In this document: positions 41,251 to 51,568 of the stretch, in pieces
How positions within the stretch are numbered: the stretch's first letter is position 1
Layout of the letters: every line of letters starts with the position of its first letter
Source: Anthoceros angustus
Lineage: Eukaryota > Plantae > Anthocerotophyta
DNA length: 64,000 nt
Reading direction: 5' to 3'
Assembly (NCBI GenBank): GCA_010909165.1
Contig: MU008214.1
Coordinates: 124,001-188,000, forward strand
Program-made: the position numbers and the translations under genes
Notes under the pieces: model-generated
Told to the model about the DNA's origin: nothing
The model's input: the letters and a program-made list of their open reading frames with translations, nothing else
The model's database searches: none

Positions 41251-43901
41251 TATCGTCAAGGTGTTGAGGAATTTCCATGTCCGGATGCGGAGTAGTGGGG
41301 TGTCGTGGAGAAGGTGGCTCCTCCTCCTCCTACAATATAGGTTCAACCAAAGGAGAGGAAGGAGAGTAATGTAGGCTAATAATGAAAGATAGTAATTTTA
41401 TTATATAAGAATTTTTATTTGTATGATATATTTTAATATAATGATTTTTATTTTAACTTTATTCATAATTTCATTAAACCACTCTTGAGGCCTCTTTCTT
41501 GTGAAAAGTCTTCAAGCCATGCAAGCGGTGAAATTGATGTAGTGAAGAAAATCCATGCGGATGATCAACCCATGGAGGACACATTGGTGCAAATTGCCTT
41601 GATCTTCCTTGTGCATTGTGTTCGATAGTGCTCTTCGGACACAATGCGAGCATGTTGAAAACTTGTTGGACTTGAGTTTTACTCTAGGAAGTTGCTTCTC
41701 CACAGTTTCAAGAACCATGGACACTTCACATAGCGAATGTTAGAGCTTTCGCACTGACGCTTGTACAAGGTCCATATTTCCAACTTTGAATACGTGTCGG
41801 GTAGATTAAAAACATCCAAGTTTGCCAGCCGCTCTGCCATAAATGTAAAAGCGTTGTCCATCCACGAAATGGCATCCATCGCATACGTCGACTGTGCCTT
41901 CGGGTTTGGTTCAAATCCATCCCAAGGTGATTCCCAAATGACTCTGCTCTTTAGCTCCTCATACCTCCTGTGGCCAAGACAATACACTCTTCTAAAGGCC
42001 TTCAAGCAGCAGCGCATAGGAGTTGCCCCCATGACATGTGTCACCACTTTCTTCCTATCACCCCGGGATCCAATCGATTGAACAAGAGACTGCAGAAATG
42101 TCTCCTGTTCCTGCCTCCCCATGCGAAGAAAGCGGTACCGTTGCTCCTAAAATCGCTCTTTACCCAACCTCAGCAAACACATTTTTATGCAACACGGCTT
42201 CCTGAAATCCGCAGTCATTGTATCCCCTTCGCTTTTTCGCAACGACACTCCAGCTTCGCGTCTTCGTCGTGATACAACAATTGACCTTGTTAGAGCCTTT
42301 AGAGACTCACTCAAAGGCTTCGGATGGAAGGAACGACAGGCATCAGGTGACTGGAACACGCTCGAATCTTCGTTGTCGCCAATGGGACCTTCCTCAACGG
42401 TGGCGACCAACGATATCCAGGAAACAAACCACGCAGCCGATGTATCTCTGGCGGGAGCATAGACATTGGGAAAGATTGAAGCGTCGGTTGGATGGGCTTC
42501 CTCAACGCAGGTCTGCAAATTCTAGGTGTTGGAGGAACACCCTGGAGGCTTAAGCGGCCTTGGCCGACATCTTCGTCGTGTAACAATATAGAAGAATGAA
42601 TAAGTATCCCACCACATGCGTTCAGCTAGCGTCTAGTTCCAATATGAAAAAAATCAACTTCAACCTTCATCATCAAGACGTCTTTCGGGAATGGCAAAGC
42701 GCAGCTGGGATGCCGCGAGTTCGGTGATGTGGTGGCTGTACAACAAGTCTCCTCACTTCTCCATGTGAAACCGCGGACATTGTGAAGACAAATCTTCTTC
42801 CTGCTCATCCTAAAACCGGATCCACTTCAACTCATAATCCGAAAACAAAATTGAGGATGAAAACCAAGTAAGCCTTCCAAAAGGCGAACTCCAACCTCTT
42901 CGCTATGGGTGTGGATGAGACGCAATGGTAAAACAACTTGCAGAAGAGCGTCGATTGAGACCACACTCGCCGCGAAATAAAGAATAGCAGGCCTTTTGGA
43001 AGACCTCCGATGGAGGAGAATGGTGAAGATGTGCAAATATTGTCTCTATTGATAGGCGTAGCGCATAGATGAGGATATTATTTTTTCCTCATAATGGGCA
43101 CATGATGGAGTTCGTCTGAGATATCCAGCATCGCGCCGTCCTGCTTTTGTAATTGACAATGAATGTGATTATATGCCAGCCGTCACAAGTCAACATGATT
43201 ATGGTTCAGCATATGGTTTATATCTGGGTATATGGAAATATGCTGGCATATGTTAATTCAGGCATGTTTTTGGGCTATAAATACCTGTTGGCGAGGAAAC
43301 CCTAATTACTCTTTGTTTTCTCTTGCCACTTTCCATCACGGTGGAGCATTCTGGCGAGTACTTCCTGTAGAGGAAGTAACGAGGGAGTGCTGACTGACTG
43401 CAGTGTTGTTGGCCGAATTCGAGGAGGTCTCCGAGCAGAATTCCACGCATCCTCCCTTCGCGGCCGCGCGAGCTTGTGATTTGAGCCATCACGGGCAGGC
43501 GCTGAGGGTGGGGGAGACAGGTGCCGGGCATTCCTCAAGTGCATCAATCGGCAGGGTCCGTGGGGGAGGTTCATTCGACTTTCATGTGAACCAATTGTCT
43601 GCTTCCTTCCAATTTCGTGATGTGCTGACAGGCTGCAGGGTTCATTCCTTGAAGATACGTACAACGTGAAGGTTTTTTAGTGCCCTGAAGCTGACACTGC
43701 TGCGTGACGCAATGAAGTACATTGTCTAGAGGGTAATGTCTCGGACCTTGTGTGATGCTTCATGAATGTAGAAACATTTGTATTGTGGCACAAGCAAATG
43801 TACAAGGATTGATGATGTGTGCATACACATCTTCCTTCTCAAGCTCACTACTTGTATGTTACCCTGTATATATGTACAGTTAAGACTGAGGTTGCTTCAC
43901 A

Positions 43902-46900
43902 TCAAAGCACACGGTTGAAGAGAAGCTGGTTAAGGTGGTGCTGCATCTTAGCGGAGGGGGAGGTCCAGCCGTCGTTGTCTGTGTATAGGTAATATGCGGC
44001 TTTGGCATTGTCCAGAAAGACGTGTTTGCAGGCCATGGGCGCAGCCGATGGAGTGAAGACATGCTGCACCAGCTGTTTCATGCTTGAATCCACGACAGCT
44101 CGGATGCCCTGGGCCGCTTCCTCCTTGCTCTTCTCTGGGTGCTCTTTCATATGAATGACCATGCTGTTGATTTCCGGTATCCCACTCTGTGACGGTTGCC
44201 GACAAAGGCGCGGCAAATTCAGGATTGAACGGGTCATGTATGAGGCTGTGAAATTAACGGAGTCTGCAACCTTCAGTTGACGCATGCGCAATGTTATCGT
44301 ACCTGGTAAGATCTGACGTCGTTCAAGAGGCGCACCACAGTCCCAGCCTTGATGTTCAGGTCGTGGTACTCCGACTGGATGGCCTCCTCGCTCAGTTCCA
44401 CGCCGGGTATCAAGAAGCTAGGTCCCAGACTACAGAGCTCCATGCCGATGCTGATTGCGCCGACTGGAATGAATTGGTCCCAGGCGGGAATAATGCCATC
44501 CCGCCTCCACTTGGCTCGGATCGTCACGCATTCCACGTAGCGTTGCAACTGCATGCGCGTGGGATGTCGGTGATGAAGCCAACGCAGAAGCGACGAGTAT
44601 CAGGCTATTGAATGTGAAATTTAGATCTCTAATTCTCACTCACCGATGCGACCACATGTCTGCTCACATCGCGGCCCTGCTCCTTGGATGCTTTCTCGGC
44701 TATCTCAACGATGGTGTCGTAGATGCCCATGAAAACGATGCGCTGCCTGAGGTTGGTGTGGTCGATCATGGACGGGTCCCAGCTGCAGAAGGACATATGG
44801 GATGCAAGCAATTGCAGGCAGTGAGAAGGGACAGCCGGTCCGGTCATTGAGTATGGTTGTGGATCCGGATGATGGGCTATAGCAACGGTACCTTTGCGTG
44901 GCAGCCTGGAACCGGTCGAGCTCCTCCTGCGAAGCCCCGGACAAGGTGGTGTAATCGTCGGCCATGGTGGCCAGGAGCATGAGCTGGGTCCTGGTCCTGC
45001 GCACCGCGGCCATCTCCGGCTCGAAAGCCGTGGAAGCCGAGACCAGGAAGCCTGGAATCACGGTGTGGTGGCGAGCAAATGGGAGACGGTCGAAGCGGCA
45101 TTCCAATACCCATCTACATACAAGTGCACAGCGCGAAGAGCAAAGTTAAGGCATGCAAGCATCAGAAATTGTGGAACCCTATCTGCATTCATGAGGATTG
45201 CAGGCTGCCTGAAAAAATCCACGTACTCCTTCAACGCCTCCAGCTCCGCGAGGTATATAGTTTGGCATATGTTGAAGTCTGCTTTTGCAAGGGACAGGAA
45301 CGCTGAGTTGCAGACGCCATACATCCTGCACAATGTTTGAAAAAGATGGATGCAGTCACATGGATTATCGTCAATCTTTCAGCTTTGTGGGCGCTGAGAA
45401 GAAAGAACATTGTATAGTAGAAGCAGTGCGATCAGATGAAACCAACCTGTAGAGGCTCTTGGCGATCCACACGTCGTCAGGGCCGTAGTGGTCGATGTAA
45501 GCTCTGGTCTCCAAGCGAGGGAAACTGGCGTACCAGGGCCAGTTCAAAGCGTACTCCAGCTCTCCCGGGAGATCTTTGGGCACAACCCACCTGTCCGATA
45601 GCTGCGGCTGTCGCTGTTTCTCGTTCAGATGGAAGCGCGTGTACTCCCAGGCCTCCTCCAGCAGGTCCTCGTCCGGGAAGCGCATCTGCGACGCGCGGTG
45701 CAGATTGAACATAGGGGTGACATCGGTTTCCAGGTCGCACCCGTGGTCGATCCAGCACGAAAACTCGGCTCCCTTGCAGAAAGCCTTGAACACATCTGCA
45801 TGCACAGTAGACAGACACAGTCACCACAAGTCTGATAAGCGCGGAGCAAGCGCAAGGATCAAACCTGCAGAAACGGGGTAGCCGTGCTGGCGCAGTAGGC
45901 GGAAGCCCATGCTGGTGTCGTCCAGGTCGGTGACGTTGCAATCGGTGGCCCAGCTCAGTCCCCGTTGTGTCCAGCGCTGGAAGGCGAAGTCCAGGATGTC
46001 CTTGATCTCGGGCTTGAAGTGGCGCGCGATTCCCAGGCGCTGCAGCCGGTCCACGATCCACAGCCGCTCGAAGATGTCCACCGGCGAGTGGTTGGGGATG
46101 ACGCCCCCCGTGGTCTCCACCAGCCGGCTCAGGTACTCCAGCGCGTTGCTGTCGCCGGTGTGCATGTACAAGCAGGCGGTGGAGGCCGGAGAGGTGAGCA
46201 TGTGGCCGGCCGGCGACTGCAGCCTCCGGATCTTGTCCCAGTCGATACCCTCCAGGGCATCCATCCCTTCCAGTGACGCCAGCAGCGTCGTGGGCTGCGA
46301 CTGCAGCAACTGCACCGGGATCTCCTTCAGCTTGCGCTCCCGCTCCCGCAGAATAGTGATGGTGGCTGGCGCGTCGTACGGCAGGTCCAGGTCCAGCGCC
46401 CGCGCCCGCTCCAGCATGGCCGGGAACACCATCTCGAACCCCACGGTCCTGTGGATCTCGGCCTCGGAATCCACCTGGTGCACGTGCTCCGGATGAAGGC
46501 GCACCCTTTCCGGCACGGCATCGGGATGCGCGCTCCACGTTCGCAGCGCCAGCACGCACGCCAAAGTCGCCACCAGTCGGTCGTAGACGTTGAACAGGTG
46601 CGCGTCGCCCGCCCAGCATCCGTCGGGAAGCTGGGGCGCACCACCCACTCCAGCGCCTCGAGTGCGGCCCGCCGCCGCCGCCACCGCCGGCACCATGGCC
46701 ACCCACGCCGCGTCGTATGGGCTCCGGAGATGGCCCCGTCCCCGAGCGACCGCAGCATGCTCTGGATGCTCCGGATCGACTCCTGGACCTCCACCACCGC
46801 CGGATCCGGCACTGGCCGCTCTAGCTTCTGCACCTCCAGGTCGAGCCCAGCTTGTACATCTGCGGCCAGAGCTTGCAGCCCGACTCCGGACGCCTGCCGT

Positions 46901-47083
46901 GCTTGTGCCGCCTCATACTTGCCTGGTCCACTACTTCTCTCGATCGAAAGCACGATGCTTCGCGGAAGTTTTCCGGGCCGGCCAATCTGGTAACTACTGC
47001 TCCTCCGGCAGAGGTACACGGCGTTGCAGAGAACTCGAAGATGCCCCTGCTGCTCTTGGGACACTCGGTGCAGCCATTGCCAT
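43902..47083 (-). CDS. Diterpene synthase with gamma-beta-alpha architecture (class II DxDD intact); exons about 47083-45865, 45795-45447, 45325-45227, 45113-44892, 44782-44644, 44548-44303, 44186-43902; a few frameshifts in exon 1
   Basis: Ser/Ala-rich transit peptide; GDGAIS..YDAAWVA; QLPDGCW; DRLVATLAC; GFEMVFP; SPASTA; FERLWIVDRLQRLGI; DLDDTSMGFRLLRQHGY; PWYASFPRLE; LAKADFN; RLLNDVRSYQ; six GT-AG introns. Confidence 0.93.
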
Positions 47084-47394
47084 GTTCAGAAGATTATTGA
47101 AATGGGCCTCAGGAGTGAGTGAGGAGATACCGGCTCTGTGCTGAAAGACAGGATTCTAGCACTTGCTTATAGAGCCAGGCCTGCCGGGGCCTATTAGCTA
47201 CCTCAATCACACAAGGTTCGTGGACGGGGAATCCAGAATTCCGAAATCTCATCGACTTCCTCCAAAGTGACCGAATGCCGGTCCTGTCTCGAACTTATAA
47301 CCTGGATTCTGGACTCCAACTTATTACCACCTTGATTCTGTACTCTATGTTGTACTTCATGCGTTTAACCTAGTCTGTGAACGTTTTCAGGCCC

Positions 47395-48266
47395 GTCGCC
47401 TAAGGCTAACGCAAACTTAATGAGCCCTGCCATTCGTATCGCCCCGTGTGGCCACGCACCCCGATGCAGAGCCGAGAGGCATGAGGCCGGCATGCGGGCA
47501 TGCCTCTCTTTCTTTCCGGTGTCTCCCTTACCGGCAACGGGGGCGTCCGTCGTCTCTCCTCTCAACGGCTCCTCCACCCTCCTCTCAACGGCTCCGTCCG
47601 CGCTCCTTTCAACGCCGTCCTTCCGCACCTGCTCACCCGTCTGTGGTCTCAACCTGTTTCCCCATCCCCTGTTCTCGTTCCTAATGCGCGCCAAAACGAA
47701 CGTTTCAAGTATTTATAACCCAGTTCTAATGCGGCTCAGTTCAGAGGGAAGCTTGACGGTACGATCGAGCAAGCGAGCGGTAGTCTCTCAAAATTGTGAT
47801 GTCAGCGGAATGGAACATTTGCCTCACACTCAAGTGCAGACACCGGGCCAGCATCTTCACCAAGGAGCATTTGTCATAGGCTGTAGGCAATCATCGAGGA
47901 AGATGAAAATGCACATGAATGTGAAGCGCGCTTACATTCCTGCTGACCGTGTAGCTGATTTTATTGCAGGTGAGAAAACATAATCTATTACAGTATGTTC
48001 AAAATGAACAGGACAGTGAGAGTTCGTGATCGAGTGCTTGGTGAACAGATTGAGACCAGAGATGGGTGACCATAAAGAGGAGCGCGGACGGGGCCGTTGA
48101 GAGGAGCGACGACGGACGCCCCGTTGCCGGAAAAGGAGACGGCGGAAAGAAAGACAAGCATGCCCGCATGCCGGCCTCATGCCTCTCGGCTTTGCATCGG
48201 GGTGCGTGACCACACGGGCGGTACAGAATGGCAGGGCTCATTAAGTTTGCGTTAGCCTTAGGCGAC
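47395..48266. repeat. Long inverted repeat (arms about 47395-47659 and 48044-48266), MITE/foldback-like
   Basis: GTCGCCTAAGGCTAACGCAAACTTAATGAGCCCTGCC at the left arm is the reverse complement of the right arm's end; mirror-image ORFs appear in the track. Confidence 0.88.
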
Positions 48267-48384
48267 TTTTCAGGGCAAGCAGGAATCTCCGAATAGAAGA
48301 GGACGAAGAACCGTACAGCGTCTCGTACGGCCTCTACTAGGTTTTCCAGTTGCCCGTGCAATTCTTAGCCTGCTTGTCAGGATG

Positions 48385-48729
48385 GCTCATGGAACACCTA
48401 AGAGGTGTTTAGTTGCCATGCAAGCCTCGAGGAAAGGAAAGCGTCGGTTAAAAGCTGGCTTAGCCTCGAGGAAAGGAAAGCGTCGGTTAAAAGCTGGCTT
48501 AGCCTCGAGGAAAGGAAAGCGTCGGTTAAAAGCTGGCTTAGCCTCGAGGAAAGGAAAGCGTCGGTTAAAAGCTAAGCTTAGCCTCGAGGGAAAGGAAGCG
48601 TCGGTTAAAAGCTGGCTTAGCCTCGAGGGAAAGGAAAGCGTCGGTTAAAAGCTCATGGAACACCCAAGAGGTGTTTAGTTGCCATGCCAAGGCTTAGCCT
48701 CGACGGAAAAGGAAAGCGTCGGTTAAAAG
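48385..48729. repeat. 39-bp tandem repeat (six copies at 48424-48653 plus one at about 48697) with 37-bp direct repeats at 48385 and 48651
   Basis: Unit GCCTCGAGGAAAGGAAAGCGTCGGTTAAAAGCTGGCTTA. Confidence 0.92.
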
Positions 48730-49308
48730 AATGTACGTGCTCGGATACTCCATGCCTCCAGGTCGTGACAGAACAATGGGCCTGCGGCCCTGCGCCCGTG
48801 TGCACCAGGCTAGGAATTCAATGCGCGCGCGCAACTCGATGGAAGCCCGCATCTGCATAGCCAGGTGTGCTCCGCAAATAGTCGCATCTTCATGACGCTG
48901 AGGAAAATCGTTGGGGCCGCGGGCCGCGATCGTCCGCCGTGCACCGAGGATTCTGGGAAAGGAAGGCGCGCGATTCCCGATTGCAAGCCTGCATGCCACA
49001 GTGATACTGTTCCTTGTTTCCTTTCCTAGAAAGAAGCGACGCAACGTTCAATGGGACATCCGCGCGCGGATCCTCTCTGGATCCCGCATTACAGGAGATG
49101 CGCGCTGGTTGGATCTGGAGGCAAGCTTGCAAGCACGAGAAATACCCGCTAGCTGTAAATGTGCACCAATATGGACGATCCGCATGCGTGGGTACATAAG
49201 AGCATTGTAACAGGTTGATCTGGGCACTGTCGTTGGCTTTCCTTGCTTGCTCACTGTTGAGGAAGATCTGTGTGTGCTGTTGGTGTACGTCGCCGGTATA
49301 CTAGTGCG

Positions 49309-51568
49309 ATGACAGGTGTAGTGGAGCCAGAGATTGCGCCACATGTATTGCAAGATCCTGTGCTTCTGCTACTCGCCACTGCGCTTGCAGCTGTAGTGGC
49401 GCTCGCGTCCCTGCTCTCCATTCTGCGGAACAGGAGGCGGCCCAATCTCCCGCCGAGTCCGCCAGGGTGCCGGTGTTCGGGAATTTGGGGTGTTCGTGAG
49501 CACCAGTCTGCCGCATCAGAAGATCACCCAGCTGGCGCACAAGTATGGCCCCATCATGTCTCTCAAGCTGGGGATGCTTGCCATCGTCGTCACGTCTCCG
49601 GAGATGGCCAAGGAAGTTTTCAAGAACTACGACAAAGAATTTGCTGATCGTCCCCGTCGACATTCAAGGAGGCTGCCTGCTACGGCGACCATTGCATGCC
49701 ATTGCTCGAGTACGGCCCTAACTGGCGGAATCTCAGGTACTCCCATGTGACTCTTTCTGCAAGCTTTTATCAGTCCACAAGATCTAGCTATATCTCAAGC
49801 GCGCGCGCGGCATAGATCGATCCATGTTAGCTAGCCAGATATGACGAATTTACTGATCACCCCTCAACAAATTCACCGCCGGACTGTTCCGCTATCGCGA
49901 CCTGCAGGAAAGTTGTGACCTTGGAACTGCTTACTGCCAAGAGGATCCAGCAATTTGAGGGGGTGCGGAGGGAGGAGGTGTCGGGCATCATTCGTTCCAT
50001 TCTGGAGGACAACCGAAACGGGGAGCATGTCGACATGGACAAAAAGAGCACCTATGTGATCATGAACATTGCCACCCGCATTCTCATGAGCAAGAGATTC
50101 TACGCCTACAGCAAAGAGTCCAGAGAACAACAAGCTGCAGGCCGTGAGGTATAATAATACATCAGCTTTCACATATAAACTTGTCATCTCAGGTTCCAAC
50201 TGTAGACATCCCAGGATACTATTGTCTTGAAAACTTGAGTCGATAGCACCAGCATGGTTACACACAATTGGTTCTAGATAGATCGCGTTCTAATATCATT
50301 GATAGATTATTGATGGGATGTCCAGAAGAATAATCAGACTGAGGACCTGAGCGACGAGTTTAAGAGGCTGAGCAGTGGCCTCATTGGCCAGCATTCCTCT
50401 CATCGGGATGTCATCCCCTACCTGGGTTTTCTGGATCGGGTGCAAAACCGCAAGGGCAAGATGGTCAAAGTCCACAACAGGTACGACTCGTTTCTGGATG
50501 GAATCCTGAAGGAGCATCGAGACCAGGCTGCCCACGTGGGCGAGCCCGAGATTTCGTTGATGTTTTGCTCGATCTGCCGCAAGAAGCAGGAGAAAAGAAG
50601 GGGTCCGGGACGATCGCATCAAAGCACTTGTCATGGTAAGAACATGTACGCCTGTCATCGTGCACCAGTTAAGTCATGGTCTGACTAAATGATCTTGATA
50701 CTTCATGACCGACTGCATACAAGTATATGCATATATTGCTGGCCTGCAGGACATGATCAACGCAGGAGTGCATTCGACCAGCCTGTGTGCATGGAGTGGG
50801 CCATGGCGGAGCTCATCCGGAATCCTGGCGTCATGAAGAAGCTGCAGGCTGAAATCGACGGAATTGTGGGCCGCGACAGGCAGGTGATGGAAGCCGACGT
50901 TGCTCAGGCCAGCTACCTGCAAGCCTTCTTGAAGGAGGTGTTAAGACTCCACCCTCCTGGACCACTGGCCATTCCTCGCCAGTCTAATGAATGGTGCAAG
51001 GTGGCCATACGACATCCCCAACACCCAACTCTTCCTCAACGTCTGGGGCATCTGCCGGGACCCCACTGTATGGCCAGACCCGCTTCACTTCCAGCCTGAA
51101 CGATTCCTTACCAGGTAATTAATGTTTCTAGCACTAGAAGTATGTATGCCTGCATTACCATCTCTCTTCTGTTCAACCACAAATCCCAGACCTCTAAGCT
51201 TGTTTAAATGACAAGATTGATATAGAACGTAAACCAAAGACACGGTTTGGCCTGCAGTGACATCGACTTCAAGGGCCATCACTACGAGTTTCTCCCTTTG
51301 GAACTGGGAGGAGAGGGTGCCCAGGGATGAACATGGCCTTGATTCTGCTGAGCTACACTTTGGCCAGGCTTGTGCACAGCTTCGACTGGGCTCTCCCGGA
51401 TGGGCAAAAGCCCGAAGACTTGGACATGTCCGAGAAGTTCGAGCTGGCGCTCCCAGAGCTCAACCTTTGATCGTAGTCCCAACTCCTCGACTAGCAGATC
51501 ATATGTACGGATTTTTCAATCACTCCGGATTCACTTTGCAATCTGAACTTAGAAAGTGCGAAACCTGA
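49309..51568 (+). CDS. Cytochrome P450, CYP71 clan (A-type); exons about 49309-49736, 49908-50148, about 50350-50635, 50750-51114, 51258-51568; several frameshifts
   Basis: N-terminal TM anchor then LPPSPPG; [11 protein letters not shown]; FADRP; LELLTAKRI; [12 protein letters not shown]; [12 protein letters not shown] (ExxR); FQPERFL; [11 protein letters not shown] heme motif; phase-0 intron before the I-helix. Confidence 0.93.

Follow-up and report, generated by a model that had tools for sequence, protein, structure and literature searches.

Analysis of a 64,000-nucleotide stretch of the genome of the hornwort Anthoceros angustus (GenBank assembly GCA_010909165.1, contig MU008214.1, positions 124,001 to 188,000 of the forward strand; hereafter the window, with positions counted from its first letter) identified a diterpene synthase gene (minus strand, 47083-43902) and a CYP71-clan cytochrome P450 gene (plus strand, 49309-51568) that lie head to head and are divergently oriented. 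Our overall reading, to which we give a probability of about 0.6, is that this is an inherited divergent pair composed of a non-gibberellin class II synthase and a CYP71-clan P450, that both genes are probably intact in the plant and that the many frame breaks seen in the assembled sequence are errors. An earlier note on this DNA had described a head-to-head diterpene synthase and CYP71-clan P450 with start codons about 2.2 kb apart, and this description is borne out by PDB, tblastn and Pfam matches and by a measured distance of 2,226 bp between the start codons at 47083 (minus) and 49309 (plus). The two genes encode non-homologous enzymes of different classes. Database searches were made with single exons or open frames, and joined frame-corrected models, with X at the breaks, were used for alignment to stored proteins.

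Layout and selection in an intact relative

The pair was compared with a relative represented by two contigs (L001 and L002) from one public sequencing run (Logan SRR33208241). L001 (3,887 bp) is 84% identical to the window over 47090-44525, introns included, and its synthase reads as an unbroken spliced open reading frame (ORF), 698 codons long, in which the LAS, PNH, FERLW, DLDD and DDYTT motifs of the window recur. The opposite end of this contig aligns to 49387-48808 and covers the first ~26 codons of the P450 and its upstream sequence on the other strand. The head-to-head layout is common to window and relative, with a shorter spacer in the relative, and synteny of the pair, which the earlier note had named as a check, is kept in L001. 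On the second contig, L002 (1,293 bp), P450 exons 4-5 are intact and include the AGVHST motif, the heme loop and a stop codon after PRLPHHLY.

Synonymous (dS) and non-synonymous (dN) divergence was calculated by the Nei-Gojobori method for both genes. The synthase compared with L001 gave dS 0.21, dN 0.075 and a dN/dS ratio (omega) of 0.36 (0.26-0.31 outside the leader), and P450 exons 4-5 compared with L002 gave dS 0.23, dN 0.019 and omega 0.08. The intron between P450 exons 4 and 5 is 79% identical to that of L002, matching dS, and no in-frame stop codons were found in either gene when read in the frame of the relative. With omega at 0.36 in the synthase and at 0.08 in P450 exons 4-5, purifying selection has acted on both genes during most of the interval since the copies split. 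The near-equal dS values of the two genes would also fit their joint inheritance.

The ends of the P450 reading frame differ between the two copies. In the segment at 49309-49335 (L001 1-80), the ATG of the window (49309) is ACG in L001, and the ATG of L001, eight codons further on, is ATT in the window. At the other end, the P450 of the relative finishes with PRLPHHLY followed by a stop codon (L002 880-894; 51497-51568 in the window), and the window is 4 bp short near 51507, a loss that includes part of this stop, with its frame running ~20 residues past the stop of the relative to 51568.

The diterpene synthase

An ORF within the big exon of the synthase (45821-46702, minus strand) had Arabidopsis ent-CPS as its best solved match (3pya, E 2e-80) and also matched abietadiene synthase (3s9v, E 7e-78) and rice syn-CPS. 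Full-length diterpene synthases (diTPSs) from ferns, conifers, Selaginella and a liverwort matched 46723-43905 in exon-sized pieces and in order in tblastn searches. The three-domain architecture is present, with the alignment spanning residues ~78 to the end of diTPSs of 830-870 aa, and in the synthase of the relative the Pfam domain PF01397 was found while PF03936 was weak. Exon borders were set at GT-AG sites, with the intact spliced ORF of L001 as a guide. Beyond one Logan contig, the nearest proteins in the protein search showed ~50% identity over the class II exon, a value consistent with a lineage sparsely covered by protein databases. The protein search returned no near-identical protein for the synthase exon and public assemblies held no exact match of a window ORF, so that the locus of this species itself seems to be missing from both collections. 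A metagenome scan with the synthase exon returned no relative.

A quick maximum-likelihood tree of 22 rows placed the window and L001 sequences on a long branch that joined TPS-c and TPS-e/f (SH-aLRT 88) and stood apart from TPS-h/d (87), with no resolved position inside the TPS-c/TPS-e/f group. All TPSs of hornworts fall into TPS-c or TPS-e/f, and the TPS-e/f members are without DxDD (PMC9169658). Because DxDD is present here and hornworts have only these two subfamilies, the synthase was filed as TPS-c type.

Alignment of the class II active site showed an intact catalytic DxDD motif (DLDD), and the class II positions associated with product outcome departed from the hormone type. LHS, PNV and FEHxW are the marks of CPS enzymes of hormone biosynthesis (PMC9169658). 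Both the window and L001 read LAS and PNH at the catalytic-base dyad (LHS, PNV), and FEHxW, which contains the histidine of substrate/Mg inhibition, is replaced by FERLW. The replacement of LHS, PNV and FEHxW by LAS, PNH and FERLW suggests a specialized, non-hormone role for the synthase. According to work cited in PMC9169658, swapping one member of the base dyad in ent-CPS leads to a hydroxylated product, and for this reason our best guess is that the enzyme would form a hydroxylated or other non-CPP labdane diphosphate.

The class I site of the α domain lacks the motifs of a class I-active, bifunctional enzyme, as DDxxD reads DDYTT and the second motif (NSE/DTE) is incomplete. Here NDVRSYQ (44303-44323) is followed after the predicted splice by SG, so that the glutamate of (N/D)Dxx(S/T)xxxE would be replaced by Gly, and compared with active enzymes the loop has lost 4 residues; no acceptor other than the predicted one at 44186 leaves the frame open. 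HMKEHP (44136-44153, minus) is conserved downstream of this motif. The α domain retains DD, N-D-x-x-S and HMKEHP, unlike true CPS enzymes in which these motifs are gone. The synthase looks like chiefly a class II cyclase and resembles a once-bifunctional enzyme with a class I site that is decaying or altered. A gibberellin-type ent-CPS or CPSKS identity was rejected on the combination of LAS, PNH, FERLW, DDYTT and the incomplete NSE/DTE motif. This motif state, with an apparently active DxDD and a class I site half lost, bears on the transition from bifunctional to monofunctional diterpene synthases.

The P450

Pieces of the P450 matched Pfam PF00067 in order (profile positions 20-70, 105-170, 282-351, 358-389 and 403-449 of 462), with the domain readable in the window only across frame breaks and intact in the relative. 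Its best solved relatives were CYP76AH1, CYP76AH3, CYP93C and CYP73A, with the animal enzymes CYP17 and CYP1 ranking next, and both the nearest named fragment and the nearest Atlas cluster were annotated 'P450 71A1-like'. On these similarities the P450 is placed in the CYP71 clan and is not assignable to a family beyond the clan. The exon 1 piece had no match in the protein search, and the frames of exon 3 gave neither a Pfam match nor a choice between two alternative frames. The ExxR, PERF and heme-loop motifs are all canonical, and the heme loop is of the RRxCPG A-type.

The I-helix departs from this pattern in both the window and the relative, where AGVHST stands in place of AGxD/ET(T/S). 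The acid-alcohol pair is absent, as the acid is replaced by His and the Thr by Ser, and a His at the acid position is unusual. The earlier note had held that both enzymes carry atypical motifs, which agrees with these substitutions and with the LAS, PNH, FERLW, DDYTT and NDVRSYQ-SG motifs of the synthase, and that the P450 is not a kaurenoic acid oxidase (KAO) of the CYP85 clan. A CYP85-clan KAO identity was rejected because the best solved matches are CYP93C, CYP76AH and CYP73A of the CYP71 clan.

Frame breaks in the assembled sequence

Frameshifts had already been suspected from the sequence, and they are real features of this assembly: the synthase contains 7-8 breaks and the P450 contains 9-11. 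Those of the synthase and of P450 exons 4-5 were located by alignment to the intact copies of the relative, and those of P450 exons 1-3 by family conservation alone. The breaks of both genes form one contiguous block of ~5 kb (46.49-51.51 kb; 46491-51507) that extends across both gene starts. All synthase breaks lie within the first 593 of the 2,559 bp of coding sequence (p ~4e-5 if 7 breaks are uniformly distributed); the remaining ~1,970 bp contain none and the 3' 2.6 kb of the gene is clean. GC content did not account for this clustering, as values were 0.667 in the broken part and 0.660 in the clean part of exon 1. Most breaks are 1-bp deletions, several of them in G or C runs, and a 1-bp break (51293) lies directly upstream of the P450 heme loop. 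The change of CCGGGAG to CCGGAG through loss of one G occurred at two separate breaks (46727 and 46491), and looks like a context-specific basecalling error.

Since the breaks occupy one block, are mostly 1-bp deletions, coincide with a low P450 dN and occur in an assembly built from Oxford Nanopore Technologies (ONT) reads, we consider it likely that they are uncorrected Nanopore consensus errors in one poorly polished stretch and that the genes are probably intact in the plant. Polishing of the Pilon type fails where short reads map ambiguously, and the block pattern would be consistent with a stretch beyond the reach of short-read polishing, perhaps through a paralogous copy elsewhere. The A. 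angustus assembly was produced from ONT 1D reads with wtdbg and Pilon polishing (PMC7027989). The P450 dN bounds any pseudogene (neutral) phase to at most ~16% of the branch leading to the window; a phase of this length is too brief to yield 9-11 indels if indels and substitutions arise in their usual proportion. Without a look at the reads, a broken frame in this assembly is no ground for calling a gene a pseudogene.

Spacer, repeats and surrounding sequence

The spacer between the two start codons is a putative divergent promoter region common to both genes, and its P450-proximal 580 bp are alignable with L001 at 69% identity. The remainder is longer in the window than in L001, with 440 bp of L001 standing opposite 1,488 bp of the window, and the spacer repeats sit in this stretch, where the window exceeds the relative by ~1 kb. 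These include an inverted repeat (47395-48266) with arms of ~210 nt in total that are 91-97% complementary and 470-576 nt apart, which can be described as MITE-like (miniature inverted-repeat transposable element) or foldback-like. A 39-bp tandem repeat (48384-48730) comprises ~7-8 copies, three of them identical, with a 37-nt direct repeat on its flanks (48385-48421 and 48651-48687).

Searches with TPS and P450 queries (tblastn) found no second TPS or P450 copy in the 64-kb window. No third pathway gene was found there, although other enzyme classes were not exhaustively searched, and the large ORFs tested near the pair gave retroelement domains or no match. A fragment of a Copia-type retroelement was located at 542-1898, where two adjoining open frames carry gag-pre-integrase, integrase core and retroviral SH3-like domains. 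An open frame of 147 aa (41679-42122, minus) lies directly downstream of the synthase gene. The coordinates of the genes, motifs and frame breaks are collected in Table 1.

Table 1. Positions in the window of the synthase, the P450, their diagnostic motifs, the spacer and the frame breaks.
Feature	Position	Strand	Basis
Diterpene synthase gene, γ-β-α, ~855-865 aa	43902-47083	minus	PDB matches, tblastn, GT-AG borders
Synthase, 7 exons	47083-45865, 45795-45447, 45325-45227, 45113-44892, 44782-44644, 44548-44303, 44186-43902	minus	
Synthase stop codon, TGA	43904-43902	minus	
Class II product-determining positions	46058-46285	minus	
LLASLEG, Ala at the LHS histidine of ent-CPS	46265-46285	minus	alignment
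IPNHSP, PNH instead of PNV	46082-46099	minus	alignment
FERLW, Arg at the histidine of gibberellin-type FEHxW	46058-46072	minus	alignment
Catalytic class II motif DxDD, intact as DLDD	45917-45928	minus	alignment with Arabidopsis ent-CPS (DIDD) and further class II enzymes
DDxxD motif of class I, degenerate as DDYTT	44945-44959	minus	aligned to class I-active diTPSs (DDLxD, DDFFD) and CPS-only enzymes; identical in relative
Second class I motif, interrupted by intron 6	44186-44323	minus	sequence, model, alignment
Synthase frame-breaking indels relative to L001	-5 at 47009, -1 at 46727, -1 at 46683, -4 at 46663, -1 at 46637	minus	exon-by-exon global alignment
Further synthase indels relative to L001	-2 at 46518 with +3 at 46509, -1 at 46491	minus	exon-by-exon global alignment
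Spacer, putative divergent promoter region, 2.2 kb, common to both genes	47084-49308	none	
Inverted-repeat element in spacer	arms within 47395-47607 and 48078-48266		repeat search
CYP71-clan P450 gene, 5 exons	49309-49736, 49908-50148, 50326-50635, 50750-51114, 51258-51568	plus	sequence, Pfam order, PDB matches; exons 4-5 aligned to L002
I-helix AGVHST in place of AGxD/ET(T/S)	50762-50779	plus	exon 4 of relative aligned to AGTDST of isoflavone synthase; window identical
ExxR, canonical as EVLR	50935-50946	plus	
PERF, canonical	51095-51106	plus	
Heme loop, canonical FxxGxRxCxG	51297-51326	plus	
P450 exons 1-3 breaks, each one base short	~49468, 49490, 49654, 50550, 50603	plus	family conservation alone
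Possible compensating pair in P450	near 50375 and 50407	plus	family conservation alone
P450 exons 4-5 breaks relative to L002	+2 at 50784, -2 at 51006, -1 at 51293, -1 at 51451	plus	alignment
Other P450 indels relative to L002	in-frame -3 at 51019; 4-bp loss near 51507	plus	alignment

Proposed function and alternative explanations

Under our reading, the synthase would act in the plastid to cyclise geranylgeranyl diphosphate to a labdane-type bicyclic diphosphate, and the Ala at the position of the catalytic-base histidine suggests that this product differs from ent-CPP and may be hydroxylated. The diphosphate could then be removed by residual class I activity of the same protein, by another synthase or by a phosphatase, after which the P450, bound to the endoplasmic reticulum, may oxidise the diterpene skeleton. 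That both enzymes belong to one pathway we put at roughly one chance in three, with adjacency and precedent as the basis for a shared function. As a candidate for a minimal diterpenoid gene cluster the locus is reasonable, though unproven. In its favour are the adjacency and its presence in the relative, the non-hormone motifs of the synthase and the precedent of TPS/CYP71-clan pairs in flowering plants (PMC6048515). The earlier note had called the locus a biosynthetic gene cluster; of this claim the adjacency stands and is kept in the relative, and the status of cluster is left in question by a locus of only two genes with no third one found in 64 kb.

Several observations weigh against our reading or its extension to a common pathway. 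A few of the breaks are not of the homopolymer kind (a gain of 2 bp within a TG repeat at 50784, the replacement of GGC by A at 51006, and the losses of 4 and 5 bp), and the block could be a real, recently decayed segment. The product of a class II enzyme is a diphosphate and is not a P450 substrate without a class I step or a phosphatase. Neither of these is encoded at the locus unless the α domain works despite damage to both of its class I motifs, and a search that did not exhaust the enzyme classes turned up neither a class I synthase nor a dehydrogenase or transferase in the neighbourhood. There are two genes only, co-function is argued from their adjacency, and at dS ~0.2 almost any two neighbouring genes would be expected to have stayed adjacent.

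These points bear on three other explanations. If the breaks were real, the pair would be dead, a decaying duplicate of a synthase-P450 block with a working copy elsewhere in the genome. The count of at least 16 breaks in ~4.2 kb of coding sequence, the sizes of several of them (+2, -2, -4 and -5), the P450 stop codon of the relative that is lost in the window and the transposon-rich surroundings could all be explained in this way. We nevertheless hold decay to be rather unlikely, as the genes show no in-frame stops and have omega values of 0.08 and 0.36 against the intact relative, the indels are far in excess of neutral decay when set against non-synonymous changes, and the confinement of breaks to one block beside ~1,970 bp of clean synthase coding sequence, together with the ONT, wtdbg and Pilon assembly method, points to artefacts. 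A more serious competitor, falling somewhat short of an even chance, is that both genes are intact and expressed and share no pathway, with that of the synthase completed elsewhere and the P450 acting on an unrelated substrate. It accommodates a probable diphosphate product that the P450 could not use with the class I partner absent from the window, a P450 whose assignment stops at the clan, an I-helix that differs from those of its most similar known diterpene oxidases and the small weight carried by conserved neighbours at this dS. Set against it are the non-random frequency of TPS/CYP71-clan pairs in plant genomes and their duplication as blocks (PMC6048515), and the common 2.2-kb divergent promoter region, part of which is alignable with the relative.

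The third explanation, that the synthase is an ordinary hornwort ent-CPS or CPSKS supplying precursors of the kaurenoic acid/gibberellin type and the P450 an oxidase of the hormone pathway, we regard as very improbable. Its class II half does have Arabidopsis ent-CPS as best solved match and the synthase does group with TPS-c and TPS-e/f and not with TPS-h/d, yet every hormone-type signature tested is absent (LHS, PNV, FEHxW, DDxxD with its TTxx extension, and a complete NSE/DTE). The P450 likewise has an A-type (RRxCPG) heme loop and is not of the CYP85 clan, and so not KAO-like, with CYP701 (kaurene oxidase) lying outside the comparison. Going beyond our preferred reading of an intact inherited pair, a more ambitious and doubtful proposal is that the locus belongs to a lineage-specific hornwort family of duplicated class II diTPS/CYP71-clan blocks that are true minimal clusters. 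In that case the pair would make an oxidised, probably hydroxylated, labdane-type diterpenoid that is new to hornworts, the synthase would be midway between a bifunctional and a class II-only enzyme and the P450 would function with a His at the position of the I-helix acid.

Comparison with known systems

Characterised plant biosynthetic gene clusters come nearly all from flowering plants, with the moss momilactone cluster as one of two named exceptions (PMC9298681), and in the literature we found no report of a terpene synthase-P450 cluster in a hornwort. The momilactone cluster of Calohypnum plumiforme is likewise a bryophyte locus that joins a diterpene synthase and P450s; its synthase is bifunctional, two CYPs and a dehydrogenase accompany it and its product is proven (PMC9298681), whereas the present locus has two genes, shows no dehydrogenase and is known from sequence alone. 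In flowering plants, TPS/CYP71-clan pairs occur in excess and are block-duplicated (Boutanaev and Osbourn 2018, PMC6048515). They resemble the present pair in their few-kb adjacency and transposon-rich setting, here with an inverted-repeat element between the genes. The angiosperm pairs contain mostly class I mono-, sesqui- and diterpene synthases, in contrast to the mainly class II-looking synthase of the hornwort pair. The diterpenoid chemistry of hornworts is, to our knowledge, poorly known, and a conserved, selectively constrained diTPS-P450 pair offers a concrete two-gene entry to it.

At the level of the individual enzymes, the P450 is closest among solved structures to CYP76AH1 ferruginol synthase and CYP93C isoflavone synthase (5ylw and 8e83; E 1e-32 to 3e-31 with exon 4 of the relative), both of the CYP71 clan. 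CYP76AH1 oxidises a labdane-related diterpene. CYP93C shares with the hornwort P450 a Ser at the I-helix threonine position; the hornwort enzyme differs from both in having His as the I-helix acid, and its identity to them is modest. The neofunctionalised liverwort and hornwort diTPSs of the TPS-c type (Jia et al. 2022, PMC9169658) are alike to the present synthase in their three domains, DxDD motif and replaced catalytic-base histidine, a replacement that implies a product different from ent-CPP. In those enzymes the residue is aromatic (kolavenyl diphosphate type) or LHS and PNV are retained, where the present synthase has Ala, PNH and FERLW; unlike them it also has class I motifs that are half decayed (it reads DDYTT and the NSE glutamate is gone) and only ~50% identity to any named protein over the class II exon. 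Finally, Arabidopsis ent-CPS (3pya) has the same fold and the same DxDD position, and differs in that the histidine of its His-Asn dyad is Ala here, its PNV is PNH and its inhibition histidine is Arg, while the α domain of the hornwort synthase still holds the DD and N-D-x-x-S that have been lost from CPS enzymes.

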